A DNA stretch of 64,000 bases from Oikopleura dioica (taxonomy: Eukaryota > Animalia > Chordata): the NCBI GenBank assembly GCA_907165135.1, contig OU015567.1:6820001-6884000 (forward strand). Direction: 5' to 3'. The notes under the pieces are model-generated. The model did no database searches. It was not told where the DNA came from and was given only the letters and a program-made list of their open reading frames with translations. This document shows, piece after piece, positions 2,941 through 38,275 of this stretch. How positions within the stretch are numbered: position 1 is the first letter of the stretch; each line of letters begins with the position of its first letter. Both the position numbers and the translations under genes were made by a program.

Positions 2941-3563
2941 GTTCTAAGGAAATTCCCTTTTTGAGAATTACTAGTTAACAAATTATTTAAATCTTCTTTT
3001 TACTCACTGCTCCTATGCTCCTTCGTCAGTTTATCTAACAAGAACCAACTGTAACTGTTACATAACTATCGTGTCCAATCATGGCTTCATTTTTCTTTCC
3101 CAATCATGTTGAATTTCAAGTTAGTCCCGTCTTTTCAAGGTAGATTCAGTCAAAAGTCGCAAAAAGGAGCACCAATCAAAAATCAACAAAAAATAACTAA
3201 ACCTACGTTGAATAGAAAGATCGTGGGCGCTTGTTTAATCCTTGGGAAATGCCGATTTTGAATGCCTGTACATCTCTAGAATAAATTAATTAATTTCACC
3301 ACTAAACGAAAAAAAATTGAAGACTTGAGTCTCTGAAGAGCTCTTTCTTACTCCCCGCATGTGTAATTGTTAAAAAGAAGCAAGCTAGAATCCCTTCCAT
3401 ATCCTTAATTTATTTGTTAAAAAAGCTGCTCCGTCGAGCTCCGAAAAATCCCAATTTCTTGAGCTGATGTGAATCGAACGCCATGTCCGAAAGTTTCCGA
3501 AAAGTTTTCCGTTAAAGTCGAGAGCGCGAATTAAAGATAGTACCTCTCTGAAATCATGTGTTC

Positions 3564-3898
3564 TATAGAATGAAAAGGACCCCTGTGCAGATCAAAATAA
3601 ATGGAGCTTGTGGAACATTGACGTTTGAATCTGCGACGGCTCCGGTTCGAGCTCACATTCGCAGAATCATTCATCCCTTTTCTAAAGTCGCGTTGCAAGG
3701 AGTAGTTGCAGGAGAAGCAAGTAAGAAATCATTACATTCGCAATTTCCACTGTTCGAATTCTAGTTGAGTACGAGCTTGGATATCCACACCCGGAAATCA
3801 TACCTTACGGACCAGAATCAGCCGTATTCGATTCATTTCTTCAAAAAATCAATATTGGCGATATCGCTTGCATAGAAATAAACGACAAACAATTCAAG
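3564..3898 (+). CDS. Spliced exons of a small uncharacterised protein (ends unresolved)
   Basis: Acceptor tctatAG at ~3563, exon RMKRTPVQIK…VVAGEA, intron 3721-3764 (gtaag…ctag), exon VEYELGYPHPEIIPYG…NDKQFK, then a gtaatt donor. Confidence 0.4.
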
Positions 3899-4061
3899 GT
3901 AATTCAGCCTTTTTTGTGAATGAATTTATTTGCTGGATACAACTACTGGCTGTGAGAAAGTACCGTTATCTGTTGGCAGTAGCTCTTTTGAACTGGGGAC
4001 AGTATAGTTGTGAGAAAGATATAGAAAAATATGAATATATGAAAATAAATATTGGAATGTG

Positions 4062-5343
4062 CTATTCAGAATATTTGTAGAAATTCAAATTCAAAAGCCA
4101 TGCTTTCGTTTGCGAGAGTTTGATTTTCTTCGATTTTCTCGCTCTCGTTCTTGCTGCAGTTCGCGCTGACGACCTCGACGAACCGCGACTAAAGTTATCT
4201 ATCAAATTTGAAAGTTTAGCTTGTTGATTACGTTCTAGTTCGGCGACGCATTCGTGAAGACGTCGCAAAAGCTCTACGCCATTCGCGGGTGTCCAGCGGA
4301 GAGGGAGATAAGCCCGGATATCGCTGAGCATATCTCGTTGGTCTTGGATCATTGATTGGAGTTGGCGGTTCGTTTCTTCGAATTCTTCGATTAGGTACTT
4401 TTTGTTTGTTCTCAAAGGTTTGATAAAACATCACTAATGACATTAGTCTAATGTAAATAACCACTGTTCGATATTTAATTTTGATCGTTGGGAACTATGC
4501 CCGCGGTACAAAAATGGGAATATTTCCATCGGAGTCAAGTGGTCGTACTCGTGAGTTGACAGCTCCACCGCATTTTTTGCTCCCTTCTTTTGGGGGACAG
4601 TGCTAGAAATAATGATTAGTGGGGGAATAGCAAGGAGGGGCAGTTAGTAACTACTAGTTACTTTTGAAAGTGAAAATAGCTGCTGCTGCCAGAAGCTGTT
4701 CAGATATTCGATGTAGGCGTAGATTGGAGTGAGTTCATTTTGGAAGTGGATGAACATCGTGTAGACTTCCAACTTTGGCATGTCCAATCGTTGGCTTGGA
4801 GTGAAGCTTCTACATTTTTCGTTGAAATTTTTAACAAAACAATCCAGTACCGTAATTCTCGAGGAACGGGAACGCTCAAGGCATAGCGTCCAAAAAGTCG
4901 AGCAAATGGTCCTCTTCGGTCTCGTCGTGGAACGGCGATGTGATAATACCAATTATCCTCGATATGATCAGTTGCGCCGTAAGTTGGTTCTTCCCCGTAC
5001 ATGTAGAAGTAGTCTGAATATCGGCCGCTTGGTGGTCGGGGAATTCGCTGGTTGACTGGGACTTGGGTCATGTCGACTTCTCTGGGTGGACGGGGCTGGA
5101 CAATGTGTGAGAGATTGGGAACTGGGCGCTAGAAAAGATGATAAGGAAATTCCAAGATTTCAATTTTGAAATCAAGAAAGAGTATGATCTTACCATTGAA
5201 ATCGGCCGTTCCTGGCCCAGATGGGGTTGTTGCGGCGCATGAGGAGTTCTCCGAGTATCAGTTCGTACTCGTTTCTCAACAGTGGTCTCTTCATCATTTT
5301 GTCCAAGCTCTTTGTTATCTCTTTTACGGCCCTTATCGCCCAT
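4062..5343 (-). CDS. Uncharacterised gene(s): charged N-terminus and C-terminal coiled coil
   Basis: ATG-initiated charged exon MGDKGRKRDNKELGQNDEE… followed by a gtaaga donor. Distal exon has heptad-like LIEEFEETNRQLQSMIQDQRDML. The middle exons could not be framed. Confidence 0.35.
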
Positions 5344-5464
5344 TATCACTGATTTCTTGTGAAGAGTGAGAAAAAACCAAGTTTACCATCTCACAATAAC
5401 CGGTCTTCTAGAGAAGGTCTAACATCCTTCTCAAATTCAATACTCAACAACATCTTGTCCTTAG

Positions 5465-6117
5465 GTCAGTCTTGCAGACATCATCCACAGCATTCCAATC
5501 AAAGAGTACGCCGACGATGACAAAATTGCTCAAGCAACGACTCTTCGCGAAATCGGAAACGGATTTTATAAAGAAAAAAAGTTTGTTGAAGCAAAACAAG
5601 CGTACAAAAACTCTCTTTACTGGAGGAAAGGAGTGATCAATTTTCAAATTAAAACGAATTATCCAGGACTCTTTTTTGATCATTGAAAAGCGGAATAACT
5701 GGATTTAAGACGGAGGAACTACAAAGAAAGAAGACTGAAATGGCTGGGAAAATCATCTCTAATTTGTCGGCAATACATGCTTTCGAAAAGAATTGGCCGA
5801 CGACAGTTACATGTTGCAATCAAGTCATAAAGATGAGCAAGGAAATGCCGAATGTAACCATCGTCAAAAATATTAACACGGTTCATCTCAGACTTGCCGA
5901 AGCGCAAGAAAGGCTGAATAACTTTGACTTGTCAAATCAAGCCATCGGTAAATTGAATCGCCAAACTTCAAATTCTAACTCAGTTTGCTCAGATTTGATC
6001 AAGGAGCCAAGCCCGGCGGAGGAAAAACGAATTAAAACAATTCAAGATCGTATCGCTGCAAAAACGAAGAAAAACGATGAGGTGATGTCGAAGAGACTGA
6101 AAAATCTTTTCGGCTAG
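5465..6117 (+). CDS. TPR protein of the FKBP/cyclophilin-40 (immunophilin) type; 5' end unresolved
   Basis: TPR1 LREIGNGFYKEKKFVEAKQAYKNSL, TPR2 KIISNLSAIHAFEKNW, TPR3 HLRLAEAQERLNNFD. The C-terminal helix ending MSKRLKNLFG* is typical of Hsp90 co-chaperone TPRs. Confidence 0.72.
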
Positions 6118-6214
6118 AGAAAGTCGAGAAAGCCCACAAGTTGTTTTCGTCTCTGTATCAATTTCAACAAGGATAAACCGAGAGAATCAACAATTTTCTA
6201 ACAGAAAAACTTTT

Positions 6215-6216
6215 AG
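6215..6216 (+). promoter_or_regulatory. Putative trans-splice acceptor (operon-like spacing)
   Basis: ttttAG/aATG sits directly before the start at 6218, 100 nt after the TPR gene stop on the same strand. Confidence 0.5.
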
Positions 6217-6217
6217 A

Positions 6218-8153
6218 ATGAACTCACCAAATGCGAGATTGCCAATAAACGAAAACACGATTCGCTCGCTCCAAGCCCAGCTCAGTCTTTTAGAGCGTTC
6301 TCTAGGAAGAGATCCCCAGACATCCGCTCCAGATTTATCACAGACATTGCCAGCTCCGATAGCTCGCTACAGCGATACAGCCAGTTCCGGCAAGCTCTCC
6401 CGCCTAGGTACGTCCCTTCAGGAGCTCTTCCATCTCTAGACGAGTTTTAGACGAATTGACAAACAAGTTGAAAGAAAAGCTCGACCAGATAGAGCAGCCT
6501 ATCAATAGAAGCCCAAACGCATACATGGAAAGCAACGCCCGTTTTAATTACACCTTTCCGTCTCAGGGGCGACTGGACTTCGATGCTTATGAAATGAAAG
6601 AAGAGGAATCGTCAGAAATGAAGGATAAAATAGCTGCTATAGAAGGAATGAAGGCGCTGGAAAGACTTGAAGCGAGGAAAAAACGTAGCGATATTCAACG
6701 AAAAATGGATGAGACCCGAAAAGAGCTCGAATTTCTCAAGGTAAAATCTGATAAAACTGCTAAGAAAGATGACATTCATTTTAGAAAGAAGAGGAGCGAC
6801 TGGAAATCGAGCAAATCAAGGCGCTTTCCATGAAGAGAATGCCTTACAGAGAGATGAATTCAGTCAATGTAGAAGTCGGAAGTCCAGATAACGATGGCGA
6901 AATCGATAACTCGGATTCTGAGCATCATACTTACACAGTCTGCCGCGACGACGAAAACCAGTTGGCGGAGAGAATCAGTTCTTTGGAACGAGTCATTGTC
7001 AAAGGTACTATTTTTTGTAAAAACCGTTTCTAAACCCCCTTTTTTCAGTGTTGGCGGAAAATGAAGATAATAAAAACCAAATCGCAGAACTAAAATCGAT
7101 TGTTGCGAAGAAATCAGCAGTCCAAAACGCCCCGCCAGCGAGCAGCGGCAAGATCTTTTCCTCGACTCCTCATAAGAACCAGAAACAGGCCAAGGGAGGA
7201 AATCTAAGCCGAACAGCTCGGGAAACTCTTCATCGCGTGGAAAATCTCTTCAAAACTCAACCAGAGTCTACTGCATTCTTCGCCACGACGATGGCGCTTC
7301 TTTCTGTAGCTAAAACTCCGAACATTCAGGTAAGCGCTCGATGCTAGAATCTTTCTAATGCGTGCTAAGAAAAAGATCAAAGAAGTGATCCAAAGCGAAA
7401 TCGATGGAACTGGAAGCGAGATTGAAATCTCTGACGGAGAAGTCAGCGAAATAGATCGAGAACAGCGACTTGCAGATCTCTACGAAAAACAACTCCCCGA
7501 TTATGTTGAATCTCTACTTGAACCCTTGATCACCAGCCTAGTTCAAAAAGTAAGACTTCCTCAAACATTCGAATCCATTAAAATTTTCAAGGATGAAGCT
7601 TTAACTCATGCCGACGTGAAAGACTTCGTCGACAAGTTTTCCTTGAACGCTGGAGTGCTCTCACTTCCAGCGCGGCAACGAGACTCGTTCAAGGGCCAGC
7701 TTCTTCTTCATTTGAGCAGTTTTATTGGAAACACTAAAATTCAACGGTAACAGTGAGCGCGAGTCGGTACTTTGGAACAATCTTTAAGGGCGACGCTGGA
7801 AAATGATTTGGTGAAGTTTTTAGCCACTCTTGTTGATAAAATCCGATCAGAGAAGAAAATGTAAGCAATTACTATCTTGAATATGAGCCCAGCTAATTCA
7901 ATCTTCAATTCAGAGATGCAGATGGAGACAATGCGCCAGTAACTCAAAACATAAAGACGGGCGCTAAGATTCAGTTTACAGATGCAGAGCTTCAGGTACG
8001 AAGACTTAATTACCTTCAACTTTTCTAACAACTCATTAGGCCCTAACATCTTATGGAAGCGGCGAGGATGACTCCGCTGAAGATTTCGATGAAGTCGACA
8101 TTATCGAAGAAACAGAAGCCTCTTTTGTTGCCGGTCTTGGCGAAGAAAACTAA
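6218..8153 (+). CDS. Multi-exon coiled-coil/low-complexity protein, tentatively PCM1-like
   Basis: Several in-frame exons separated by ~40-nt introns, with coiled coils. The helical region FKGQLLLHLSSFIG…LENDLVKFLATL loosely resembles the PCM1 C-domain. Acidic tail DDSAEDFDEVDII…GEEN* ends at 8153. The gene is solid; the identity is weak. Confidence 0.55.
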
Positions 8154-8457
8154 CCCTTCGTATTTCAGTTCTACTTTATATAACACAACCAAATTAGAGG
8201 TCACCTTCACTTTCACTGCCTCAACAAAAATATTTTTTTCACAATAAATTCTTATTTTATTAAAAATCCGAGAATCAATTTTGATTTTAAATTGATCTAA
8301 TGCTTTATTTATTTCACTATAACTCGACATTTTTCGGTATTGATGAATTCTACAAGTAACGGATTGAATTTTCGGAAATTTCAAAATACGCAGTGGCTAT
8401 TCAATATCAAGAGATAAATTTACAAATTCCATTCTTCAGCATTCAGGAAAGTCTTTC

Positions 8458-11400
8458 TTACAGTCGAACTGTGCACGCGCCAGTTCTGTGGTTTGTCCAT
8501 CCAGCGTCGCATTCACACGTGACTCCGAATCGCGTCGCAACGCAGGAGCCGTTCTGACACCCGCCTGGTAGTCCACAGAAGTTGTTTGAACCAGTCTGAT
8601 AATGGGTCAATTAGTGGACTCCTCGTTAATTGATTTCACACTTCTCCCTTTTGACGGGAAAAGTTCGTCGTCCTTAAGTTCTTTTGATCCCTTCCTGTTC
8701 TACTTCTGGATTAGAAATTGGCACCGCTCGACTATCATCGCTCATGTTTGGACCCATGATCGAGCTCAAATCCTCGTCCATGGAAGAATAGCCTGGAAGG
8801 GAGGAATCATCGAATTCTTCTTCCATATTGTCCATTGGATCGTAAGAGGGGAAGGCATTCTCGCTCGAATCATCGTAATCCGGTCGGAACTGATCTGGGT
8901 TGAAGGAATTGTCTTCAGAGTCGTCTGAAGACGAGTCTGAAGAAGAGGAGGAAGATCCAGTGGAGTTTTCAGCATCAGAATCCCGAACCGTCGCGCAGCT
9001 CAAATCCTTGAAAAAATACAGTAACGCTGAATTGAAAAGAGAATTCTTCTGTGTTACCTTGGCGATTGAGTTGTCACAAGCAAAGCATTGCTTCTCCGTT
9101 CCCCAATAACCACCCTTGCCCTCGCAGCAGCATTGATTAAATGTGACGCCCCACTCTGAATTGTTAAAATTGAAACACACGAGTCAATTGATTTAGGAGC
9201 TTCATCCCCCGATTCGAAATCATTTGACAACAACTGATCAATGCAGAATTGCTTGCTTTTTTTGCGCGACCTCGTTTTTACTTCCTCCGCGTCAAATATT
9301 GCCGCTTAGCAGCAAAACGATTGCCCTCCGAGTTCCTCTTTGATAGTTGAGGAACTCTGACGCCCCCTGCGAGGGCGCCGTGAGCTGAAATAAGGAGGTT
9401 GCCCAAGAGAGAAGAGAGAGCTCCCACGGTGAAGTCCTCAAGGCGCTGCAGGAAGCCACTTTATTTTTTTCAGAAGAGGAGACTGTATAACTCTATCAGA
9501 GACAGACAGAAGAAAATTAAGAGATGGGTAGCTCTAAGAAATCTATTCGCTGTGCGATAAGCTTTTTAAAAGGTCTGTTTTATAGAGAAAAAATTGATTA
9601 GTAAAATGTTTGCTTAGGGCTGATAACAATATGCAGTTTTATCAGCTTGATTTCCGGCTCTTTGCTGCTTGGAATCGGAGTTTACTTGCTAATGATGATT
9701 GCTCAGTTCAAGGAAGAGTTTTTGACGTTCGTCAATGACCAAGTTTTGCCGTTTACGTTAATAGGAGTTGGAATTTATATTGCGATTACGGCGACTACAG
9801 GTAGTTTTTCCTCGAATTCCAATTCATGCCGATTTCTAGGGCTTTGTCTTGCTTGTAATGTCCGGAAAGCGGTCGTGTACTGCCACAGTATTCTATCAGT
9901 AATCGCGTTTACTATTTTGGTTTCCGGGGGAGTACTTTTGCTGACCTTTGAGGTAAATTTACGTTTTATGACTCTTTTCTCTACGCATTTTCAGAATTTG
10001 GTCGCGGAAGAACTTTCGAATGGGCTTATTCGCCAGATGACAAACTACAGCCAATTCACTTCCGAACCCGAGTTAATAGGTACCCTTGTAGTTTTTTAAA
10101 TGATTCCTTACGAGGTGATAACAACTGGGACTCAGATGGGTTCTGAATTTGAATTCTTGATTTCGTTTTTTTTTTGAAAATTGAAAATTTGGAGGGAAAC
10201 TAAAAGGACAAATGCTGTGAATACTCCTGTGATTCATAAACAAGTTCTTCAAGTGAAATTCAAATTCATAGCCCCTCTCACCGGATGAATAGTAAACCTT
10301 GTAAAGCGCCACTTGACCTCAATAAAAATATTTTTACTACGGTATTTTTAGACGAAATCCAAGTGACACTTGGGTGCTGCGGATCAGCTGGCGCTGGTGA
10401 CTGGTTAAAGTACGGCGCGCAAAATCCACCTGATTCATGCTGCTCCCAGGGACACAACTGTTGGACTCACTCGAAGCTTCAACACTTGCGAGTCCAAGAT
10501 GGATGTGTGGATAAATGTAAGCTTGCAGGATTTAGAGTCTCTCCAATCATTCAGTGCTCGGAGTCAAAAATGAAGAAGTCGAGAACAGTCTTATCGGCAC
10601 TCCTTACGACAATCTCAATTACTTGATCATTGGGATATTATCATTTGCATGCCTGGAAATACTTGCAGCAATACTTTCCTGCTGCGTTGGGCTCAAAGTT
10701 CACCAACTTAGACATTTCTCTTATCATTCCGGGAAGAACTAACTATCCGTCTTTGCAACCTCTACCTCCTCTATCAAAGTTTTACCTCACTGTACATATG
10801 AAAAAGCCTACCTAATAAACAATAATAATTAATTGTACCTGTCGCAAAAAGATTGTCACATCCAACATCTGTGTCGCCACGATCACTGTAGCACTTTGCT
10901 GGCTTGTTGAAGTCGACAGTTTCTTGCTTGTTCTGGACCAGGGCGCGGTAAGGATTTCCAGCGATTGACTTTTGACAGCGGCCGTCAATCTCCGTCTCTC
11001 CCTAGAAAGAGATGCCTCCTGATTGTTGAAGAAAGCTTTACCTCGGGACAAATGCAAATATATCCGCCATCAGTATCCGTGCACTGTCCTCCTTTGCATC
11101 GAGAGAAACACTCGTTGAAATCGACACAGCTCTCTTAACGAACATTACGATTATCCTGACTTCACCATCCTTTACTTGTTCGATGGTCCCAGTAATATCC
11201 GGGCTTTTCGCATCCGCACTTGTATCCAGCTGGCCCATTGTCGAAGCACTTTCCACCTGGGCACAGTTTTTCGTCGCCGAAGATGAGGCACTCGTCGATT
11301 TCATTTCGATTTGCGGTGAATCCCTTTCCGTATTTGCACTAAATTTCATATTGTTATCTTTGATGAAGTTCATATTCTTACCTTTTTGAGATAATCAGAA

Positions 11401-14400
11401 GTTGATTGATCCGGGCAGGGTCTTCCTTCCCAAGAAATGGGAGTTACAGTTCCAGCGCAGCAGCACTCATCCTGTGAGACATCGTCGAAGTCTCCTTGCA
11501 CCGTTTTGCATGTTCCGTAGTCAATAGAGAACTTATCACTAATAAAAATTAACAATTTTTCAACGGGAAATGCATACTTAGAGCTAACGATGTAATCAGA
11601 AAGCGACGACGAGTCATCACTGAAAGAGCACAGTTCTTCATACTCGTTTGTTCCTTCTTGGGGACAAGCCGAGCACATGATTTCTCCAGTTTCTTGCATA
11701 AAATGAGTTCCATGTCCACAGCAGCATCTCGAAAACGTGAATGCGCCCAAGCTCTGGTGGTCCTGACATTCTCCTCGGTAGCACTTGAATTTGAAAGTTT
11801 TCCTTTGAAATCAAGGAAGAAAGTTATCATACCTGGCCCCATTCGGAATATGGAGTGATCTCGAAGTTCTCGACGCAGCGTTTGACTTCGTAAAAGTAGC
11901 CTGATGGGCAAACACATCTAAAAGACAAATGAAAAAATTGAATCCAATATTTTCGCCTACTCATAGCCATAATCAGATTCTGGGTCATTTTTGCACTGAG
12001 CTTCGCCACAAACTCGATGCTTTCCAAGTGCTTCTTCCAAAATCTTGCACTTATCTTCCTCGAAGATTCTTGTACATGTCGGGCCATTTTCAGTGTTCAT
12101 CGTTTCATAGCCGTCGTAGCAATTGCAAGTATACAGTGGTTCTGTATTCGTGCACATTCCAAAGTCACATGGGTTACTTCCTTCACACTCGTCGATGTCG
12201 TCTTTGCAGTCGTCTCCTTGGTATCCCATTGGACAATCGAATTCGTAGATAAAGTCTTCAGCAGGTCCGAGAGAGCTTATCGAAGACGAAGAGTTCCAAG
12301 CTCTCAAATTATTTTCACTCGAGTCGACTGCGATTCCGGAGTCAACGCCACTGTAGCTGGAAACGAGAGAGCCACTTGAACTGGAGCTTGAGCCAGAATA
12401 ATTTGGACCATAACTTGAGACAGAGTTTGAAGATGAGTAATTAGGATTTTCATATGGGTTTTGGATATCTTCGATTTGGTCAGCTTTTACAGAAGTTGTC
12501 GTGGTTGAGGTTGTAGTTGTAGTTTGGGGCTGAGGAGTTGTTGTAGTGGTAGTCGTGGTCGTCGTTGTTGTCGTTGTCGTTGTTGTTGTGGTCGTAGTTG
12601 TAGTGATTCTGGTCGTTCTCCTCGTCGCTGGTCTCCTCGTAGGTCGTTCGGTTGGCTCTGCAACTTGATTATAAACAGGGACGCACGATCCGCTACTACA
12701 GTCAATGTGGACAGCTTCGCCAGGATTAACAGAAATCGACTGCGAGCTTGATCGATCTGGAATGAAATCTCCACGGTTAGTTGCATCGAACTGTTCGTAT
12801 TCGATGACACAGTCATCTCCCTGGCAATCAAACTCGATATCCTCTGGGACAGCATGAACATCTCCGCAGCCAGCTTCGAAACAGTCTTCCGATGGCGCGT
12901 GAGGATTTGGCTGAGGAATAGAGGGGTAACGGTCGGTTTTAGCAGGAGCAGGTCGGCATTCTCCGATTTCATCTCGCTCGAATCCTGGTCTCGCGCATGG
13001 ACTGTTGTCGACTACAGCTTCGATTTCGATTCCGACTGCGCTTTCGGGAGATCCGCAGTCACCACCATTGCAGGATATTTCTGGCTTTGAACCGTCAGGT
13101 TCGCCTTGGCTTCCAATTCGAGCTGGATAGGACTCAGGTGAATTGTCAAATGGTCGATTCGGTTGTCTAGCTTCATTTGTCTTTTCAGGAGCGATGACAG
13201 CTTCTGGCTCTCCACAGTCGGCCGTGATGCAATCGACTGATGGAGCAGCGCGATCTGGTTGACCTTGATGGGATGGTCTTGGTCGTGGTCGTTTCGGAGC
13301 ATTATTGTTGCAGTCTTGGCCATCGGCGCAAGGAACGAAATCAACAACTGCTTCTATAGAAATTCCAGCTTCTTCTTCTGGTGAACCACAATCAAGGCCG
13401 TTGCAACCGGAAATCGGCACGTCCTTATTTGCTTCGGGCTCATAGGTTCCACTTGATCCGCCATTTCCGCCGCTGTTATATTGGTTCTTTGGTCGAGTTT
13501 CCATCAGATGGGTTATTCAACTTTATTTTTAATTGATTTTCAAGAATAATTCTTGCTACGATTTTGTGCAAAAATAACCCAAGTCATAAGTTCCCTGAAT
13601 TTCATCTTCTGGAACTCCACAGTCATCACAAGGTTGTTCTGGTCTTTCTGTTAGCTCTTCTCGCTCAACAGGAGCAGCTTTCGTTGTTGGTCGTCTTGTT
13701 GGTCGAGTTCTTCGTCTCCTTGTTGTTGTAGTTGTAGTTGTTGTTGAAGTTGTTGTTGTAGTTGTAGTGGTAGTCGTGGTTGTTGTTGGTGGTCTTGTCG
13801 TTCTTGGTTTTTGGCAACCACCGCATCTTCGAGAGCAGGTGGATACTTTACTGCACGGTCTCTGAGGCCTGTTTCTGGTAATCGTCACTGGAGGTAGAGT
13901 CGTGACCTTGCTTGGCGCAGGGCGTTGGGTTCGACTACAAGGCGAATTTGCTCGAGCACCACATCGAGAGAGCTGTTGTTTTGCCGCGCGTTGACATGGG
14001 CTTTCGCTTTGGATAAAAAATGATAAAATGATTTTGAGGTTATTCGAGATTAAATTTATCCGTAGCTTGCTGGAGCGGGCTGGGTGAGCTCGTCTCGCTC
14101 AACTTGAGCGTCTTTTGCATAAGGGCATGAAGGTCGCTTTCGTCCGGAAGCTTCTGGATTGAAAACTCGACATGCGGGTTGCCCCTGGCCTCCACACGTT
14201 TTGCGTTCCATGCATGCTGGCTTCCCTGGCTGGTTACAGGGCCCCCTGTTGATAACAGTTTGAACTCGGAAGTTGTGATTTGGGCCTTTGGATTCCCAGT
14301 TCAGAGGTTTCGAGTTGCTGTTTGCGGTGACCGAAAAAGACATTTTATTCTCGGTGTATGGCTTGGAACTGGTCGGCTTCTGGACGGAAGTGACAACACG

Positions 14401-25550: not shown

Positions 25551-28256
25551 ATGGAAGACAAAATCGGACTCACAAAACTTAAAATCACTGATCATCCTTC
25601 TCAACTGTCAAGGGAAAAAGTTGAGTGTTGGCTGAAAGAATTTCTTCCGAAATTGAAGAGGACGACTTCGCGGACGCAGAAATGTCGACTTTTGGAATCG
25701 GTCGAGCGACTTGATTTTGAAAATGATAGATATGCTGGTTCGTGGAAACTCTTAAAATTTGATAAAGAAGGCTGTGGAACGATTTACAACGGAAAAAATA
25801 GAAAACTTGAGGAGTTTGAGCAGACAAATTTTCAAAAACAAATTCTTCAAAATGATCCGTCTTTAATCGAAAACACAATTGGACGATGGGAAATCAAGGA
25901 AGAGTCTGGTGATTGGCAATTAGATGACGATTTGGAGGAGAAGGTGCTTTCGCGAGGGGGAGAAGCGATTGTGCTTGCTGAAAATTTCGACGTGCTTGAG
26001 ACAGCTGTGCGAGTGCAGGTCTTTGATCCGTTCATTTTCACGGAGGAGTTTGAAGAAAATGGATTTACTTGCGAGATACATCTTTCTAAAGGTAAAGACG
26101 GGTTTGAAATATTTTTTTAAGTTTTTTTTTGAGAATTTGAACCAGCAAAACAAAAATCGGAAAACGAAGAATCATCAGAAGCCGAGAATCAAATGCCATA
26201 CCATAAAAACGTTATCCACAACTTTGTGAATGTTGAGCTGTTTCACGGGAGAGACCAGAGCTGGAAAAAAGTATACTTCCCCCCGCCCTTCAAAAATCTG
26301 CAGGGCGCCCTTCATTCTTGAAGGGCGGTGAAGTACGAAATGGCTCTGAAGTATACTTCACGTGCTGAAGTATACTTCAGCTATCGGTTCTTATCGAAAA
26401 CTTTAGCTGCCACTTCATCTGCCACAATCAGCGTGGTTTAAATCATGGCGCCTGAGAGCCAATAAGCGGAAAATTTGAAAAAATTCTGGCGGATGGATTC
26501 TGATGGCCGACAGAACCAAGTTGAAGTAGAGTGAAGGGCGGAAGGGCGGTTGAAGTAGAGGGAAGGGCGGAAGTACACTTCACGCCCTTCAACGCCCTGC
26601 AACGCCCTGAAGTATACTTCATGAAGTATACTTCATTCTGAAGGGCGAGTGAAGTATACTTTTTTACCAACTCTGGGAGAGACGAGAAAAGAAAAGATTG
26701 TTTGGGATGGATTACGATTATGGAGAGAGGAGAGGCAAATTTGAGGACTTTGTTGAAGGAAGAAAAGATTGATTTGGAAAAAAGAAAGAAGATTGCGAAT
26801 GGAATTTTGGATGGATATGAATGTTTGTGGAGTCGTGGAATTCATCATCATGATCTGAAATTAGAAAACGTTTTGCTTGTTGGTGAAACTCCGAAACTGA
26901 TTGACTTCGGGCTCGTTAGGGAAAGAAGCGGACGAAAAGACTACCGAGAAATGGGGTACGCCAGAAGAGGAACAAAATACAAAACTGGTAGAGCTCTTAG
27001 TAAGTTTTTGGAAATTTTCAATTTTTACAAATTTTGAAGCTGCTGGGACGCCGGGATTCACTTCTCAAGCTCAAATCGCGATTGGAGCTGGTTATACTGT
27101 TTTTAATCTTTATTATTTTCTTTTCTGCGATTGGAAGACTGCGCGGACACTTCTTTACCAACCACTCGATCATGGTCAAAGAGAAGAAATAGATAAAATT
27201 GTTGAAGTAAGAGCTTGATTTGTTTGTTTTGTAATTTTTGTTTTTTTAGAAGTGTGGAGCAACCTCAATCAAAAAATTGAATCAAAAGCCTCTCTATATT
27301 TCAACATTTCGGAATTTCTTCTCAGAAGTCACGAAAATAATCTCACTGAAAAACGCGTCTACCGTTTTTTGCCTTGATGACCCAAACTTGACTCAATCCT
27401 GCAAAATGTCGAGTTTAAAACAAAACGCGACAAAGTGCGTCAACCAAAACATGCAGAATTTGACGAAAAACGTCTTCGACCAAAAAACTAGTCAACTTTG
27501 CGTCCCAATTTCGATCACCACTCTCCTCCGACACGCCATCAAAAATGACCTTGCTTTTGAAGACGAATACGGTCATTGCACATTTGAAAAAATTCTGGCA
27601 ACTTTGACGATGATCGTCTTTCCGCGAAGTTTGGCCGGACTCAATTTGAATCCCAACAAAAAAGAAAAAGAAAAGCAAGAAAACGAAATCGAGATTCTTT
27701 TGAACCGACTTTGCAAAGAAACTTATCTCATGAGAAGTGGATGGCAAATCATCAGAGGAGTATATGACGAAAACAAATCTTATGTAAAAGATTTTCCACC
27801 TAAATCAAGCTGTCAAATCAGTTCGGGTTATTCATCTTAAATAACCCCAATCTAAACCCAGTGACTCTGAACGAAAATTTCACCTTCACTCGTCCAGCAA
27901 CAGTCACTGGCGCCTATTTACCCTCTTCCGGCGATCTCCTCTTCCACCAAATGACGCTCGACCGGGTCGAAAACGGCCAGTACGTTCTCCAAAACTCCGA
28001 TTTCAAGGACCACTCTCCTGGTAAAATATTTCTATCAAACTCAAACAAGCCTCGTTCAGTTCTCCGCATTCCACTTAAAAGTCCATACTACGCTTCTCCC
28101 GAATACATCTTCAATCTTGTCAACCAAACTGAGTGCAACGTTTACCAAGACAACGAAATCAAACTCACACTCGTTAACCAGTATTTACAGAACATGGACG
28201 AAAACACCTGGTATCTTCTTCCTACTGCTTACACCACCCAGCTCATCTCAGAATAA
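25551..28256 (+). CDS. Kinase-papain-like protease fusion, paralogue A (exon 2 interrupted by a MITE)
   Basis: VLSRGGEAIVL, TAVRV, HKNVI, GWITIMERG, HHDLKLENVLL, LIDFG, AGTPGF; then DQKTSQLCVPIS … FHQMTLDRVENGQYVLQNS. Introns at ~26092-26133, 27000-27038, 27208-27250 and ~27830-27860. Confidence 0.8.
26256..26675. mobile_element. 420-bp hAT-type MITE (family B) inserted in a kinase exon
   Basis: TIRs cagagctggaaaaaagtatacttc / gaagtatacttttttaccaactctg. Perfect 8-bp TSD ggagagac (26248-55, 26676-83). Many internal gaagtatacttc palindromes. Confidence 0.9.
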
Positions 28257-28504
28257 ACACTCTTATCAATCACAAGGGCATTTTAAAATCATGGAAAACG
28301 ATTCTTTTTGACGATCTTCTTTGACTTCAATTCTTTATTTTCAAAAAATAGAGATATATTTAAAAACAGAGTTAAATGGGCAGCCGAACTGAATCATGAG
28401 ACACCTATATTTTAGACAATTTATGGGGCCTCAACAACACTTTCATTTTTATTATTTACTTGTTTATTGAAATCATGGTAAAGTGAAATCAAATCATACA
28501 GTTT

Positions 28505-29283
28505 TTATTGTGGCAGTTTCGCAATTTTAGCTGGAGGAGAGTCTTCGTCGATGATGATTCTCTCCAGCGCCTTTCGATTTTTGGACGATTTCGAAGATGG
28601 TGAGCTCTCGTCCTTGTCCCGTTTCAGCTTTGCTCGGCGATTTTGGAACCATGTGATCACCTGAAAAACAAAATGAATATCAACATTATCTGACTGATTG
28701 ATTACCTGAGTAGAAGTTAGTCCAAGAGTATCAGCGACATTGTCCCTGTCACTTGGAGTAAGATACTTCTGATGCTCGAATCGCTTCTCCAACTCTCTGA
28801 AAACAACTGTTAATTCATGAGTCTTTGTCTATTCCTTACTGTAGTTGGAAATTTGAAAACGCAGTTCTGCTTTTTCTTCGTTTTTTCGACCGATGATTCT
28901 TTCCCAAAATCGCCGAGAACTCATTTCCCGACGATCCAAAAGAGTTGCTATGAGTCAGCTCCAGCAGAGCATTGAGTGGAGTGGCGTTTTGCTCCTCGCT
29001 CAGAATGTCGTCGATTCGGAAGGATCGTTTCTTTGCTTTCTTGGGAGACGATGAGGATTGGAAGGAAAGAGGGGCTTACTTTTTGGCTCTGATTTGCTGG
29101 TGATTCTTGAAGAGGTTTTCTTTGCTGAGCTTGCTGGGCGATTGCTTGTCGTACGACTGGAGGAGTCAAAAGAAGAGGAAATATTCCTATGGAAGTATTT
29201 TTATTTTGCCCGTTTTTGAAAATGAATACCTGTTTTTGCCATAAGCTGGGAAATCGCGAGACTGTTTCCGTATAAAAATCCAT
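28505..29283 (-). CDS. Lbx: Ladybird-class NK homeobox protein
   Basis: Spliced homeodomain [69 protein letters not shown] and [15 protein letters not shown] are diagnostic of Lbx. Confidence 0.9.
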
Positions 29284-29584
29284 TGTTATTTTGTGTTTGT
29301 TCTCAAAAGAAGGTGTTGCTGGTTGCAGACCTTATCGAATTCTGATTTAGATTTCCGCTGGTCGAGGACACGGCGAGTGCCCGAATGCATATTTGGGCAC
29401 GCGGGGGCGCTACTCATCCGCTGATCCCGCCGTTATCATTTCTTTGCCATGTGCCCGAGAGGTAATAAACAGCATCCTTATTTGGGCGATCAAGGCAGTT
29501 TTCTAGCGCTCTATTTGATAATGCTAGTAAATTAAGGAGGATTTATTGAATCATAATTGCAAAAATTATTGAAATAAGTCGCAA

Positions 29585-29810
29585 GTAGAAGACCTGAATC
29601 AAGGACTAAAAGAGCTCGAATGAAAAGCCGCAAGGCGGCTTTTTTTGTAAACGAAGCTGCATAGCGGCTTCGCCAGAATAAATAATAGTTTATAGTGTAT
29701 TTTTAGCGAAGCTGCTACGCGGCTTCGTTTACAGAAAAGCCGCTATGCAGCTTTTTATTCGAGCTCTTTTGAGTCCTGACTCAGGCTTTCTTCACGTGCT
29801 TCCGAGCTCA
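29585..29810. mobile_element. MITE family A copy
   Basis: cctgaatcaagg…four gccgc hairpins…cctgactcagg…ccgagctca. Confidence 0.8.
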
Positions 29811-30179
29811 CGATGATACAGTTCTTCATGAAAAAAAAATACAGTCAGAGCAATAAAATGTAATTGTACCAAATAATTATTGATAAAAAGACGACGACGC
29901 GCGAAATAGTTGTAAGATCCAATTAAGTGTGTTAATCGATGCTAATTGCACTTTGCATTGGTAGAGGTTGATGACAGTGCCGTGGCAGCGAGGCCAGTGG
30001 CGTGTAATTTAAAGATTTAGAGCCGTCTCCGTGCAAATCATCCAAAAACCAATCCCCAATTTCAGCCCAGTTAACGCATTAGCGTTTTATGGCTTTGTCC
30101 CTCTTTCAGACAGGTCACGGGAAATGTGTGTTTTTAATGCGTGTTGATCTTTGAAATTTCTTCTTTGGCAAGCGAAGTT

Positions 30180-30447
30180 CTAAGCTCGGCAACCTGTGTA
30201 AAAAACCTGAGTCAGGTTCTGAAATTCAGAATCTGAATAGCTCAAATGAAAAGCCGCAAAGCGGCTTTTTAAAAACGAAGCCGCAGAGCGGCTTCGCAAT
30301 ACAATCACTCTTATTTACTTTAAATATCGGCGAAGCCGCTTTGCGGCTTCGTTTTTAAAAGCCGCTTCGCGGCTTTTCATTTGAGCTATTCAGATTCTGA
30401 ATTTCAGAACCTGACTCAGGTTTTTTAATACAGATTACCGAGCCTAA
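30180..30447. mobile_element. MITE family A, full-length
   Basis: Whole-element palindrome; flanks gcgaagtt / gtcaagtt (6/8 TSD match). Confidence 0.88.
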
Positions 30448-30866
30448 GTCAAGTTGTTTAGTTCTAGATATGTGGCTCTTGTTTTGCTTCCAAAAAATCA
30501 GCCTAGAAAAAAGCTGAGAAAAAAATATTTTTTGCGAAAAACGGATGATTTCTTGTGAGTACATCAACGAGTGGTACGAGTGGCTGGACTCTCATACGAT
30601 CATCGATTGGATTCTTTCCTGGAGTTCTTTAGGTTTGTCCCTCAATTTTCGCCTTCATGGGTTGAATGGGTTTCTTAAGACATAACTCAACTACTAGCGG
30701 AGATTCTCGGACTTCTTTACTGCATCAATTTTTCGCTGCAAGTTTTGAGGCGACGGACGATTTCATTCAACTTGCAGAACAATTCAAAGGGAACCCAGAC
30801 TATTCTATCCATCGTTCCGACAAAACAAACTACGGAAAGAAGAAGCTAACGATACTGTGACTTGAT

Positions 30867-31042
30867 TGGGGCTCGGCAACCTGTGTAGAATACCTAAGTC
30901 AGGGTCTGAAAGGTTTTTTGAAAAGCCGCGAAAATCGTGGCGAAGCCGCTTCGCGGCTTTGTTAAAAAAGCCGCGACGGAGCTTTTCATAAAAGACCTTT
31001 CAGACCCTGACTCAGGTTTTCTACAAAGGTTGCCAAGCCCAG
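30867..31042. mobile_element. MITE family A, internally deleted
   Basis: Both TIRs present; flanks gacttgat / gactcgat (7/8 TSD match). Confidence 0.88.
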
Positions 31043-32019
31043 GACTCGATCTTTCTCTGTCCATAGAGCTAATAAACGATAAACTAGACTAGGTAGTATC
31101 AGGAGAAGGAATTAAGCTCCACTATTAGCAATTCTTCTCGCAGAAGCTGTGCTTCGATTGATGTATTTATAACAGATCAGTTTGTGAAAATTGAGAAATG
31201 ATTTAGGCGGCAGCAATTGCAAGGAGCGGTTAATTGGGCTCGCGCAAATTATCGAACAGAAACTGTCACCACCGTTGCAAATACTAGCAATTTACTGTTT
31301 TCGCTGGAATTTCACGTTAAAAGCACGTCAGGTGCACAATGTGCAGTAGTGCTGAGAGCGTGGGGATAATTAAGTACTCGAAGGTGTAGGTGCTGACGCA
31401 TGAACCTGCGTTAATTGCGCCTCAAAGTTGAAAAGCAATTAATTGACGCGAGTTTGGCGAAAAGGGCCACCGCTGCGGCCACCTTTCTCACCTCGTGAAT
31501 TTTCGAAAATCACCAAAACCTGCAGCGCGATGACAGACGGCAGTTTTCACAAAAATCAACCTCCAAAAAAGGAGACAAAAGGAGAGTCAAGTTCTCTTCC
31601 TTGATTTCTGAATTGGAGTTTCGAGGTACTTTTGATGATTGAACGATTATAATTTTATCAACCATAGTTCAGAAAGAAGAGCTGGAAACTAATGAAGGGT
31701 AAAATTAGGGAAAGGCTTCGTTATTCGATCTCGTCGTACATTTTTACACACTAATGACTTTTTTATGACCGTAAAATAATTGTCTCAAAATTGGAACTTG
31801 TTGAATGAGTAACTAAAAAGCTTTCCTTTTTTTATTTACTGCTCTTGAAATTCTTGAGGGAGCTGACCCTTCGAAACAATTCGAATAAGTATAATAAAAA
31901 CCGCATCGTAAAATACTGAGTAAGTTGTAAATACTTAGCTGATCGGTCTTTCACAGTATACAACGATATCGCCCTATAGAGAAAAATTTCTGATACTCAG
32001 AAATAAACATCTTCAGAAA

Positions 32020-34232
32020 ATGCAAGTTTCGACGCATCCAAAAGAACTGACAAGAGAAGCCGTTGAGAATTGGCTTGGAGATTTTAGAAAGCAATTGGAA
32101 AGAACAACGAGCAGAGATGATTTGGAAAGATTGATTTTGTCTGTTGAGAGGGTGGAATTTAAAAATTATCGTTTTGCTGATTGGCATGTTGTTGTTTTTG
32201 ACAATGAAAAAGGAAAAGTTTATGATTTAGACGGTTTCGCAGAAGAATGGACAATAACTGCATTTCAAAAAACGATCCTCGACAAGAATACAAATTTTGT
32301 AAAACCATCAATTCAACGATCAAAATTGAAAGAAGAAACTGGGAAATGGATTCTTGATCAATATCTTCAGCAGAAAGTAATTGCGGCCGGTGGAGAAGCG
32401 ATTGTTTTGGAAGAAAAAATTGGAGAATTGGATGTGGCTGTTCGGGTTCAGGCCTTTGATCCGGCGCTGTTTACGGATAAAGAGGAGGAGTTGGAGTTTG
32501 AAATTCATCTCTCAAAAGGTAGATTTGCTCGTTTTCTATTCTATCTTTCGAACTTTCAGAATACCAAATCGCTGAAGATAGGGAAAATGATCGAGCCAAT
32601 GTTATTCCAATTCATCAAAATGTTATAAAAAATTTCGTCAATGTCGAGATTTTCCCCAGCAATGATGAAAAGAGAGAAGATTGCATAGGATGGATAACAA
32701 TAATGGAGAAATGCGAGTTCGAATTGAGACACAGATTGAAAAATGAAGATTTGAACTTAGAAGAAAGAAAGAAAATCGCGATCGAAGTTTTAGAGGGAAA
32801 CCAGTATTTGTGGGAAATTGGAATTTTACATTATGACCAGAAGCCAGAAAATATTCTTCTTAAAAATGGAGAAGTTAAATTAATCGATTTCGGGATCGTT
32901 GAAGAATTGACTGGACGAATGAGCTACCGAGAGATGGGATATGTGAGGAGAGGGAGCAAGTATTACAATTGTGAATATTTATGTGAGTTTTTCACTGCAG
33001 TTTTTTTTTTATTATCTTTTCCGCAGATGCCGGATCCCCCGCTTTTTCGGAAAGTGTACAACTTTCTGTCGGAGTCGGAGGAAATGCATCACCAACTCAC
33101 ATTTTCATACTTTGCGACTGGAAAACAGCTTGGAGTCTTCTATTCAAGCCGATCGAAGAAAACGAAAGAATAAAAATTAAAGAAGAATTAAAGGTGACAT
33201 TCACGTGATAATGATTTTACTATATTTTTATACCTTCGATCTTTAAGGTGTCAAATGCTGAGTGGCTCTCAAACGATGACCCGTCTTTCGAACAAATCCA
33301 AAAACTGACAAGAATAATTTCTTTAAAAAGCGCGTCTTCTGATTTTTGCCTGGACGATCCAAATTTGACGAAGTCTTTGGCAATGGCCTATCTCAAACCA
33401 AAACTCTCGAAACATATCAATTTTGACTTCAAAAATGTGTCGAAGAATGTTTTAAATCAGAAAGAAAGCGATCTGTGTGTCCCCATTTCAGTCAGTACGC
33501 TGTTGAGATGGGCGATCAAAAATGATTTAATAACTCATCATTTCGATTATTTTGAAATGAGAGCATATTTTTCTCTCGTAAAAATATTCACGATACTGAC
33601 AATGATAATTTATCCGCGCAGTCTGGCTGGATTCAATCTCAATCCAAAGAATGAAGAACAAGAATTTCAAGAAAACGAAATTGATTTGCTTCTCAAAAGA
33701 ATCAAACTCAGAACTTATTTGAATAAAAGCGGATGGGAAATGGTAAAAGGTCTCGATACAGATGAAGCCACAACAGGGGCGTTCGATTTTGAAGAAGGTA
33801 AAAATTCGATTGAAAATATTTTTCTTTTTCAAATTAATATTTTTCATGAAAATTTTAATTTGACAATGATTTTAAGTCTTTCTTCATCCCAAATACATGT
33901 TTACTCGCCCCTTTACTGTCACTGGCGCTTATCTTCATCCGGACGGATTGATAATTTTCCACCAAATGGTGGTCGACCGAGTCGAAAACTCCGAATTCAT
34001 TCTCCAAAACACACTTGTCGAGCATTCCGGCTCTGAAATCAGAATTCCCCTTTCGAGAGAATTTTACGCTTCCTACGAGACGATAGAAGATTGCTACAAT
34101 TGCTTCAATGATTTCGTCTACCATGGGCCTAACAACGAGTCGATTGCAATAGTGAACGAGCATTTCAATATGGAAACAGCCAAATGGTATCTCCTGCCTC
34201 AAGCATATTCCATTACTCTTATTCCAGAATAA
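32020..34232 (+). CDS. Kinase-papain-like protease fusion, paralogue B (apparently intact)
   Basis: VIAAGGEAIVL, VAVRV, HQNVI, GWITIMEKC, HYDQKPENILL, LIDFG, AGSPAF; then NQKESDLCVPIS … FHQMVVDRVENSEFILQNT. Colinear with paralogue A, with equivalent intron positions. Confidence 0.82.
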
Positions 34233-35633: not shown

Positions 35634-38275
35634 ATGACGCTAAGATACGAAGAACTCAAAACACAAGCAGAAACTAAAATCGCCGAAGCTCCAGCAAATC
35701 CGAGTTGGCTGAACAGCGAAAAGTGCGATCCAGAAGCTGGAAATTGCGCACCACAGTATCAGTCCATGCCAATCTCCGGCAAACCGTCTTTTGGAAGGCC
35801 CATTCCCGGAGGATACAGTAAGATCCGAAGATTTGGAAGATCAGCAGATGATGAGCACATGAGCCCAAACACTGTCAACAACTGGATCGGAAAGCAAGAT
35901 TTCGAAGTGATTGGAGAATACCTCCAGCGACTCAATCGTCTCGCTTACCAAAACAACAGCTTCGATCCAAACGTTCAGCAAGCGAATAAGAGTCCTTACG
36001 TCAACAACATCGGCACGAGGATCATCGGCGGTCAAGCTGCAAAAGAACATAGTTGGCCTTGGCAAGCGCACTTGAACATCTGCGGTCAGTGGTACAACGG
36101 CAAGAACGTCTGCCAAGTCTGCGGCGCCACACTCGTCTCGCCCAAGCATCTCGTCACGGCTGCCCACTGCGTGCCCGAAATCCACACTTCTTCTTCCGTG
36201 ATGCTTGGCTCCAACTCGAAATTCGAGGGAGGCAACATCGTTCTTCTCAGGTCGAAGAAGCGCGTCAAGTACGTTGCTGTCAGCCATTTTATCAGACATC
36301 ATAATTGGAACAAGCCAGAGCCTTACAACAATGATATCGCCATTGTCGTAATGGAAGACGAAGTCGAATTCACTGATAAGGTTTCTCCTATGTGTCTTCC
36401 TAAAGGAACAGGGTTGAAACAAGATTAACTGAATTCAGAGCATGATATTTTTCGATAAAGAGCCGACCCTAAATGAACCTGAAAATGATAGTTTTTCTTT
36501 TCAACCCAGGCGAAAGAGTCCGTTTGTTTTTCGGAAGGCACTCCTTGCGTGGCAACCGGATGGGGCCGAATCGATTCTCAAACCAACTCCTTCCCCGACA
36601 TGCTCCAGGAAGTCGCTGTCAAGGTAACTGCTCCGCAAGTTATTGTCACATTAAATAAACTCGAACAACCAAGATCATCGATCGCGAGCGATGCAAGCAG
36701 TTCCACGGTTACGATACAGTAACGGAGAATATGATCTGCGCTGGCTATGAAAACGGAGGGCGAGATTCGTGCTCTGGTGATTCTGGTGGACCCCTGGTTT
36801 GCCGACCTGGACCAGTGGGAACGCCATGGGTTCTGTATGGCATCATTTCTTGGGGACACGGCTGCGCTAGAAAAGGATCGCCAGGTGTTTACACGAATGT
36901 TCCGAAGATGATCGACTGGGTGAAAGAAAAGACCGGCTTGAAGCCTACTTATTCGATGGAAGAATGCTACTCCGAATCAATCAGAGAAAATAAACAAGTC
37001 AATCAAGCAGGAACCGATCTTAAACGACCATACGGAGAGTTGAACTGCGACTCGCCAAATGGCAACGGAGTGTTTCAAACCGACAGCGGAGTCTTCAAAA
37101 CTGCTAATTACCCGAAAAACTATCCGAAAAACCAAGTCTGTTCTTTTTGCGTCAAGCCAGCTCGCTCTGGCGGTTTTGTACAAATTGACGTCAACGAAAT
37201 CCAGTTGGACAGCAAGAAGAGCTGCGAGAAGAGAGGCGACTACTTACTAGTCGAACCAAAGGACAAAGAAGCGTACTACTTGTGTCACGTGAGAAGATCG
37301 AAGGACTATGTTCATACGATCATCAACTCTGGGCCTATTTGCTTGAGATTCGTTTCCAATGGCGAAGTCGAACGGTAAGAAAGATTTTTTTTCATCATTG
37401 AAAATTTTAAAGCGTTTTAAATTCGAGCTTCATTTTTATCAAAAAATCTTTCTCAAACTTAATTTTCAGCAGTGACCAAAACGGGGAAAGGACATTTAGC
37501 AATAGGTAAAAATCGAAATCCCGGCTAGAATCCCACAAAATGCCAATTTTTGGGAGCAATTAACACACACATCGTCATCTCATTACTAGATCGATTTGTT
37601 TTTTGCCGAAAGCTCGAAATCACAGATTAATCTTATTTTGAGCGTAGTTACGTCCACGGGCATTTTAACAAATTTACTTTCAGCGCTGGTCTGAACGCAG
37701 TTTACAAGCAAATCGACTCTCCACCAAGTCGTTGCGGCGGTGATATGGTTCAATCTCTCAATTTGGACAACCCAGAAGTGAGAATTACCTCCCTCGATTA
37801 TCCGGAAAAATACCTCGATAGATCAAGATCCAGGTAAAATTTCGACCACGAGCGATCCATTCTCATGCTTTTCTAGCTGCGCCTGGTTGATTAAGGTCCC
37901 CGATCACGTGAAAAAGCAAGGCTACAGAGTTCGACTCGACTTTAGCGTCCTCCAACTCGAGAAAAACAAGTTCAACGAAGTTTTCTGCGACAAATCGGAT
38001 ACGATTACGATTTATGCATCGAACACATGCGAGGAACGGTTCTTGAAACATCCTTTTTGATGATTTCATCGTTGATTTTCTTTTCAAAAACCACGAAAAA
38101 GCGCGAGTCAATGGCATCCGCGAAGATTCTCTACGAGCTGTGCGGCTTCTACCGGCCCAAGTATGTGCCGTACCTGGACATCAACTCGGCCTCGTTTTGC
38201 ATATTTTTCAACATCAACGGCGACACTTCAAAGAACGGCGCCGGCTTCGACGCCAAGGTCAAGCTCATCAAGTGA
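35634..38275 (+). CDS. Trypsin-family serine protease followed by two CUB domains (ovochymase-like architecture); 5' end unresolved
   Basis: R|[35 protein letters not shown]1: [18 protein letters not shown]…[11 protein letters not shown]2: [10 protein letters not shown]…CAWLI…NGAGFDAKV*. Confidence 0.88.

Follow-up and report, generated by a model that had tools for sequence, protein, structure and literature searches.

The window considered here is a stretch of 64,000 nucleotides of the Oikopleura dioica genome (GenBank assembly GCA_907165135.1, contig OU015567.1, positions 6,820,001 to 6,884,000 of the forward strand), and all coordinates refer to positions within it. It holds two paralogous genes, called gene 1 and gene 2 below, which are predicted to encode a kinase-like domain followed by a papain-fold (clan CA) cysteine peptidase domain in a single chain. 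The best explanation of the data, which we hold to be probable, is that both belong to a family of single-polypeptide kinase-like and papain-fold proteins, in which a competent intracellular peptidase is controlled or targeted by the kinase-like domain.

Gene models and predicted domains

25551–28256 (+): gene 1, 707 amino acids in six exons (25551–26091, 26134–26270, 26687–26999, 27040–27206, 27250–27820, 27862–28256); hand-built model, open frame, all introns GT-AG
32020–34232 (+): gene 2, 664 amino acids in five exons (32020–32518, 32560–32982, 33027–33193, 33248–33797, 33877–34232); hand-built model, intact without disruption

An initial annotation, made from the DNA alone, had placed two genes at these positions, and complete spliced reading frames are indeed present there, from the ATG at 25551 to the stop at 28256 and from the ATG at 32020 to the stop at 34232. 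All nine introns are of the GT-AG type and eight of them measure 40–79 nt. The five of gene 1 comprise four short ones (40–43 nt) and a single long one of 416 nt, the four of gene 2 span 41–79 nt, and four intron positions are common to both genes. The host genome is compact and has very short introns. The two proteins align end to end with 45% identity over 705 aligned positions (N-domain about 44%, kinase 52%, linker 34%, protease 48%). The order given by the initial annotation, namely an orphan N-domain, a kinase, a conserved linker and a C-domain, agrees with Pfam matches and with the alignment of paralogs.

27481–28253 (+): gene 1 papain-fold domain (spliced; intron 27821–27861), placed by coordinates, conservation and the fold of a paralog (P0095)
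27481–27501 (+): gene 1 QKTSQLC, with Gln464 and Cys470
27622–27639 (+): gene 1 PRSLAG
27736–27744 (+): gene 1 GW
27945–27995 (+): gene 1 HQMTLDRVENGQYVLQN, with His605 and Asn621
33458–34229 (+): gene 2 papain-fold domain (spliced; intron 33798–33876), placed by coordinates, alignment and conservation
33458–33478 (+): gene 2 QKESDLC, with Gln434 and Cys440
33614–33631 (+): gene 2 PRSLAG
33960–34010 (+): gene 2 HQMVVDRVENSEFILQN, with His575 and Asn591

Both genes carry the patterns Q-x5-C and H-x15-N in the C-domain, and the four motif positions named at the outset all translate as stated. The combined pattern Q-x5-C ... H-x15-N arises in 1–3% of shuffled C-domains of either gene, so that the motif alone is weak evidence; the case for a papain fold is carried by the conservation of the motifs and by their structural placement. 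Sequence profiles do not recognize the domain. Pfam gave no match for the C-domain up to E 10, whether with the pieces of the window, with nine members or with all 56 aligned members of the family, and the Peptidase_C1 profile (PF00112) did not match the family at E 10. Sequence searches of the PDB with single exons, a two-sequence profile and a 56-sequence profile returned nothing significant; the best match of the family profile was aminopeptidase C (E 0.63, not significant), with the Gln/Cys and His motifs aligned.

The domain is split by an intron in the window, and residues 72–373 of paralog P0095 (55% identical to gene 1) served as the folded stand-in. The AlphaFold2 (AF2) model, computed from a 56-row alignment that included the exon pieces of the window, has a mean predicted local distance difference test score (pLDDT) of 80.9, and its core from about residue 78 onward is mostly above 90. 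When this model was compared by VIA-align with 48,161 PDB representatives, the best 50 matches were all clan CA peptidases, among them xylellain and Der p 1 (both Z 9.8), cathepsin B (9.2) and the C39 domain of PCAT1 (8.8), with staphopain, UfSP, ATG4 and IdeS at Z 7.7–8.2. In a second look, ervatamin reached Z 9.7, and papain (1stf_E) was aligned over 150 residues with Z 9.2 and a root-mean-square deviation of 3.7 Å. Residues 73 to 299 of the model lie on papain 19 to 212, in an alignment that starts at the oxyanion Gln and reaches the papain C-terminus, with Gln73 on Gln19 and Cys79 on Cys25 at equal spacing; several further alignments with C1 and C39 peptidases likewise start at the position of the catalytic Gln. 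A long helix of the model (79–94) opens with Cys79, and Gln73 stands six residues earlier; His212 lies in strand 209–220 and Asn228 just after strand 223–227.

Foldseek found no match in the PDB at E below 1e-3, although its weak best rows (staphopain, cathepsin S, ComA/PCAT1 and AvrPphB) were papain-like, and it took VIA-align to settle the fold. A shape search of the ESM Atlas is in agreement and returned clusters of C39_2, Peptidase_C1 and C10. A feature search of the ESM Atlas with two exon pieces of the C-domain gave UvrD and GAF clusters, which we set aside as low-scoring, unrelated noise.

Conservation was counted in a 56-sequence family alignment with a mean column identity of 22%. Against this background the Gln is kept in 47 of 49 sequences, the Cys in 49 of 49 and the His in 37 of 39, with Thr in place of His in one distant C-domain; the Asn is kept in 29 of 42 and is Asp in two more. 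PRSxxG and GW motifs are nearly invariant across the family. Conservation and modeling together show the C-domain to be a papain-fold (clan CA) domain with a conserved Gln/Cys/His(/Asn) set. This is what the initial annotation had proposed from the papain-like Q/C and H/N spacing, which both genes display and which recurs in the alignment from papain Gln19. Its further statement that all four residues are retained holds for both genes; across the family, Gln, Cys and His are kept at 95–100% and Asn less often.

25926–27206 (+): gene 1 kinase-like domain (spliced), Pkinase match E 6e-13, 49 bits
25950–25973 (+): gene 1 G-loop
26004–26018 (+): gene 1 beta3 strand AVRVQ with Arg
26843–26869 (+): gene 1 catalytic loop HHHDLKLEN
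26903–26911 (+): gene 1 DFG
26960–26980 (+): gene 1 activation-loop RRGT
27042–27059 (+): gene 1 GTPGF
32391–33193 (+): gene 2 kinase-like domain (spliced), Pkinase match E 3e-14, 53 bits
32383–32406 (+): gene 2 G-loop
32437–32451 (+): gene 2 beta3 Arg in AVRVQ
32826–32852 (+): gene 2 LHYDQKPEN
32886–32894 (+): gene 2 DFG
32943–32963 (+): gene 2 RRGS

Both genes exceed the gathering cut-off of the Pfam Pkinase profile (PF00069, 31.7 bits), which is matched only at about 75–160 of its 263 positions, i.e. in the central third from the hinge to DFG. The catalytic Asp, Lys and Asn are present in 42 of 42 family members and the Asp of DFG in 41 of 41, and the glycine loop retains GG across the family. 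The position of the beta3 lysine is taken by Arg in 34 of 35 sequences. The middle residue of HxD is F, Y, C, H or K, and Arg once only, which makes this a non-RD kinase; no APE motif was found in the 42 family kinases, and its position is mostly occupied by Gln. The nearest solved kinases (CDK9, KIT, TTK, KSR) are reached only at E 1e-5 to 1e-3. By its sequence the domain looks like a divergent orphan branch that still binds nucleotide, and with Arg in place of the beta3 lysine its activity may be weak, or its role purely regulatory. The activation segment contains a conserved basic motif, RRG(T/S)KY, which resembles a phosphorylation site of basophilic kinases (26960–26980 and 32943–32963).

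25551–25925 (+): gene 1 N-terminal domain, no Pfam match, AF2 pLDDT 79
32020–32390 (+): gene 2 N-terminal domain, aligned with gene 1 and 26 paralogs, no Pfam match
27250–27480 (+): gene 1 linker, with the FCLDDPNLT motif at 27367–27393

The N-domain of about 120–125 amino acids was modeled as a small alpha/beta unit. Pfam matched it in neither gene, and the best structural match (Z 4.7, not significant) points to no recognized fold; its initial description as an orphan domain thus stands. The linker is modeled at low confidence (pLDDT 40–65), and within it the motif FCLDDPNLT is identical in gene 1 and gene 2 and conserved across the family.

Hydrophobic N-termini are absent from both proteins, as are segments resembling a transmembrane helix (maximum Kyte-Doolittle mean over 19 residues below 1.5), and a search for an upstream exon encoding a signal peptide found none, in agreement with the initial reading. 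Cytosolic localization, which had been proposed on these grounds, may be extended to the whole family only with a reservation. Six paralogs from GenBank O. dioica records (P0177, P0175, P0174, P0183, P0176 and P0188), including the closest relatives of gene 1, start with a hydrophobic stretch, MLEFSILAILATCIAGMIQ, followed by basic residues, and reach a Kyte-Doolittle 19-residue mean of 2.0. Judged by sequence, this segment is probably a membrane anchor, and some paralogs may accordingly be membrane-tethered.

Family distribution, tandem arrays and neighboring genes

When 1.84 billion representative proteins were searched exhaustively by HMMER, the Gln/Cys half of the C-domain found 84 clusters; of these, P0056 and P0079 were discarded as unrelated false positives, both being bacterial repeat proteins. 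Two word-indexed searches added many more full-length members. At least 55 family members are GenBank records of O. dioica, named only as "unnamed protein product" or "Protein kinase domain-containing protein", and the remainder stem from ENA, JGI and Logan marine assemblies. Five paralogs of 692–707 amino acids (P0177, P0175, P0174, P0166 and P0168) are 47–53% identical to gene 1 from the N-domain to the C-terminus, the first three aligning with it end to end at 52%. Because full-length paralogs align from the N-domain to the C-terminus, the family as a rule has the three-part architecture. The proteins of the window have no database match closer than about 55% identity, and so neither of them surfaced itself in these searches, an exact look-up of the spliced proteins not having been made.

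In the Bergen O. dioica assembly, contig FN654836.1 carries four tandem copies on one strand within 12 kb (700–12300), of which only two are listed as called genes; the layout is the same as that of gene 1 and gene 2. No third copy of the kinase-protease gene was found within the window. The two genes are paralogs, as had been suggested, and at the same time members of a large family instead of an isolated pair. A distant clade (about 27% identity, sample ERZ508537) has the C-domain directly after the kinase reading frame or within the same frame. One contig of this sample (GC content 35%) encodes at 1395–3455 a 686-amino-acid open reading frame composed of a C-domain, a kinase and a second C-domain, and in the first of its papain-fold domains the catalytic His is replaced by Thr. 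A scan of viral contigs with the two-sequence alignment of gene 1 and gene 2 revealed no relative. So far, the family has been seen only in Oikopleura and in marine metagenome contigs.

28505–28792 (−): open reading frame encoding a homeodomain, between gene 1 and gene 2 (Pfam Homeodomain E 2e-9)
35634–36428 (+): exon of a trypsin-like serine protease, just downstream of gene 2 (Pfam Trypsin E 3e-22)

The homeodomain gene probably contains an intron, because its Pfam match falls in two stretches.

Proposed mechanism, opposing evidence and alternatives

Each protein is a single chain that starts with an alpha/beta N-domain of about 120 amino acids and of no known fold. A very divergent eukaryotic-type kinase comes next, in which the catalytic Asp, Lys and Asn and the DFG are retained, beta3 has Arg, and both the RD arginine and the APE motif are lacking. 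A flexible linker with the conserved linear motif FCLDDPNLTKS then leads to a C-terminal clan CA cysteine peptidase domain with intact Gln, Cys, His and Asn. This architecture, the fold and the conservation of the residues are what the data show. In the mechanism that we propose, the peptidase is probably catalytically competent; it is also probably intracellular, and its substrates would be recruited, primed or controlled via the kinase-like domain. Such control might be exerted by nucleotide binding, by dimerization, or by phosphorylation of either the linker or the RRG(S/T) activation loop. It would resemble IRE1 and RNase L, where a kinase or pseudokinase domain acts on a C-terminal effector. 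A large, fast-diverging tandem family with a non-RD kinase would fit a role in defense or genetic conflict and suggests one, without proving it.

Several points weigh against this explanation. Z scores of 9–10 lie modestly above the 7–8 that unmatched models often reach, and for this reason the fold argument rests on matches to a single clan, coverage of the whole domain and the placement of the residues. Convergence of the Cys, His and Asn side chains is suggested by the topology of the model. The Asn gives way to another residue in roughly one member out of four, a lower conservation than that of Gln, Cys or His, and one GenBank paralog (P0003) has Ser instead of Cys. Arg in beta3 is a classic kinase-dead substitution, and phosphorylation may be absent. 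Gating of the protease by the kinase, self-processing and a role in immunity, all raised by the initial annotation, are hypotheses. Further points concern the integrity of gene 1 and its transcripts.

26271–26686 (+): candidate intron of 416 nt in the kinase (second) exon of gene 1, bearing a miniature inverted-repeat transposable element (MITE); read from sequence and inverted repeats
26248–26686: MITE-like element, by target duplication, terminal repeats and palindromes

On the reading of its sequence, gene 1 would be intact only if the 416 nt with the MITE are removed by splicing. The rival explanation is that gene 1 is a recently inactivated pseudogene, in which the MITE remains unspliced and breaks the kinase exon, so that gene 2 would be the only functional copy. 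The position of the insert is an uninterrupted exon in gene 2 and in other paralogs, including some of the Bergen strain. The perfect 8-bp target-site duplication (GGAGAGAC) and the perfect terminal inverted repeats of 15 nt point to a recent insertion; the element also contains several copies of the palindrome TGAAGTATACTTCA. Read-through at 26271 meets a stop within about 50 nt, and splicing to the first AG that follows the pyrimidine tract would put the downstream sequence out of frame. On the other hand, splicing from GT at 26271 to AG at 26686 preserves the frame and turns one residue into five in a variable loop of the N-lobe, and the exons downstream of the insert remain open over 1.5 kb with every catalytic residue intact. 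We regard the pseudogene explanation as a serious one, if somewhat doubtful, and 26271–26686 as a candidate for the gain of an intron from a transposon.

The RNA data comprised three bulk oligo-dT runs and one single-cell run under the same species label. In these four runs, no read matched 26120–32119 with at least 90% identity over its whole length. The reads gave only short partial matches of 90–95%, which come from transcripts of paralogs; those at 26771–26803 and 27942–27974 cover conserved motifs, and their flanks differ in a paralog-like manner. Paralogs of the family are so transcribed in the sampled runs, which may stem from a divergent lineage. ENA contig L003 was considered as cDNA evidence for a single transcript and rejected, as it has no poly(A) tail and no upstream kinase sequence.

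Among the alternatives that concern function, one would narrow the explanation of a kinase-controlled peptidase. Here, the papain-fold domain would be a deubiquitinase or a protease of ubiquitin-like proteins, and the protein would couple phosphorylation to the removal of such modifiers. The protein is presumably cytosolic and lacks a signal peptide, a prodomain and a Pfam C1 signature, which is consistent with this, and UfSP, ATG4, ZUFSP and Josephin-like clippases are found among the structural matches (Z 6–8). However, C1 and C39 peptidases rather than deubiquitinases give the best structural matches, and ten full-length paralogs that were scanned contain no UBA or ubiquitin-related Pfam domain. 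We consider this assignment unlikely.

A chordate-lineage sensor-effector, whose variable N-domain or non-RD kinase senses infection, damage or a selfish element and switches on the protease, appears distinctly unlikely at present.

The protease might also act in cis, cutting the linker near FCLDDPNLTKS and splitting the kinase from the protease in a one-shot maturation or activation. The conserved motif does lie in a stretch modeled as flexible (pLDDT 40–65), and the distant 686-amino-acid frame, with C-domain, kinase and C-domain and no stop between them, has the look of a polyprotein. The motif might just as well serve for docking or be phosphorylated, however, and the long frame, whose first C-domain lacks the His, may represent two fused tandem genes. 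Self-cleavage is very unlikely in our opinion. Least likely of all is a scaffold of two pseudoenzymes, with a kinase that binds nucleotide or partners and a papain fold that binds peptides: Arg in beta3 (34 of 35), the lack of APE, Pfam coverage of only the central third of the kinase, the variable Asn and the few members without Cys or His speak for it, but the invariant Asp, Lys, Asn and DFG of the kinase, together with 95–100% conservation of Gln, Cys and His in the protease versus a background of 22%, are the expected outcome of purifying selection on catalysis.

Relation to known systems and implications

The closest structural relatives of the C-domain, as far as the model of P0095 goes, are the C1 and C39 peptidases. 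MEROPS family C1A (papain, cathepsins, ervatamin, Der p 1) shares the predicted fold, papain being aligned over 19–212 and Z values ranging from 9.2 to 9.8. In both, Gln stands six residues before Cys, Cys opens the central helix, and Asn follows His after 16 residues and is itself followed by Ser or Thr. The distance from Cys to His is 133–135 residues in the family, against 134 in papain. In contrast to C1A enzymes, the family has no detectable sequence similarity to them, no signal peptide and no prodomain; it has its own PRSxxG and GW motifs, is fused to a kinase and is presumably cytosolic.

Bleomycin hydrolase and aminopeptidase C (C1B) are cytosolic papain-fold enzymes of about 450 amino acids that form self-compartmentalizing oligomers. 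They provide the only PDB sequence met by the family profile, at a level that is not significant (E 0.63), and they contain no kinase. The C39 domains of PCAT and ComA are likewise papain-fold Gln/Cys/His domains fused to a nucleotide-binding machine (Z 8.3–8.9), and nearly the whole C39 domain is aligned, starting at the position of the catalytic Gln. They differ in being bacterial, in their size (about 130–150 amino acids versus about 240 here) and in their partner, an ABC transporter instead of a kinase; the third catalytic residue of C39 is Asp rather than Asn.

IRE1 and RNase L are, in our view, the closest working analogy, with a kinase or pseudokinase followed by a C-terminal effector in one chain. 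In these proteins, nucleotide binding and dimerization of the kinase-like domain switch on the C-terminal hydrolytic effector. Their effector is an RNase (KEN domain) instead of a protease, they are unrelated to the family in sequence, and gating in the family described here would be comparable by analogy only. KSR1/2 naturally have Arg at the position of the beta3 lysine and keep the other catalytic residues; KSR chains are among the weak kinase matches in the PDB, with no specific relationship to the family.

No published description of the family or of a kinase-papain architecture was found in the literature searched. In that literature, the only fusion of a papain-superfamily domain and a kinase is that of the plant EDR1/CTR1-type Raf-like kinases (PMC10318531), with the opposite domain order, with an EDR1 domain from the transglutaminase-like C71/C93 branch, and in plants instead of chordates. 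PF14381 (EDR1) matched neither the genes of the window nor the family. The initial remark that this architecture is not recognized among characterized chordate proteins can thus be upheld, with the qualification that a related fusion is known from plants.

What is new here, as far as the literature searched goes, is the pairing of a kinase with a C-terminal C1/C39-like papain-fold peptidase in a single cytosolic chain, both domain types being well known in themselves. The family is large, its host is a tractable model among the chordates, and its peptidase domain is not represented by any Pfam model. With the papain-fold domain clan CA would gain a new family, and with the kinase domain the kinome would gain an orphan branch. 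If kinase and protease are coupled, this would represent a new wiring of phosphorylation to proteolysis. Should the sensor-effector interpretation be true, the family would be an expanded, fast-evolving system of intracellular defense in Oikopleura, an animal in which much of the customary immune repertoire has been lost, and it would be analogous to kinase-gated effectors such as RNase L.

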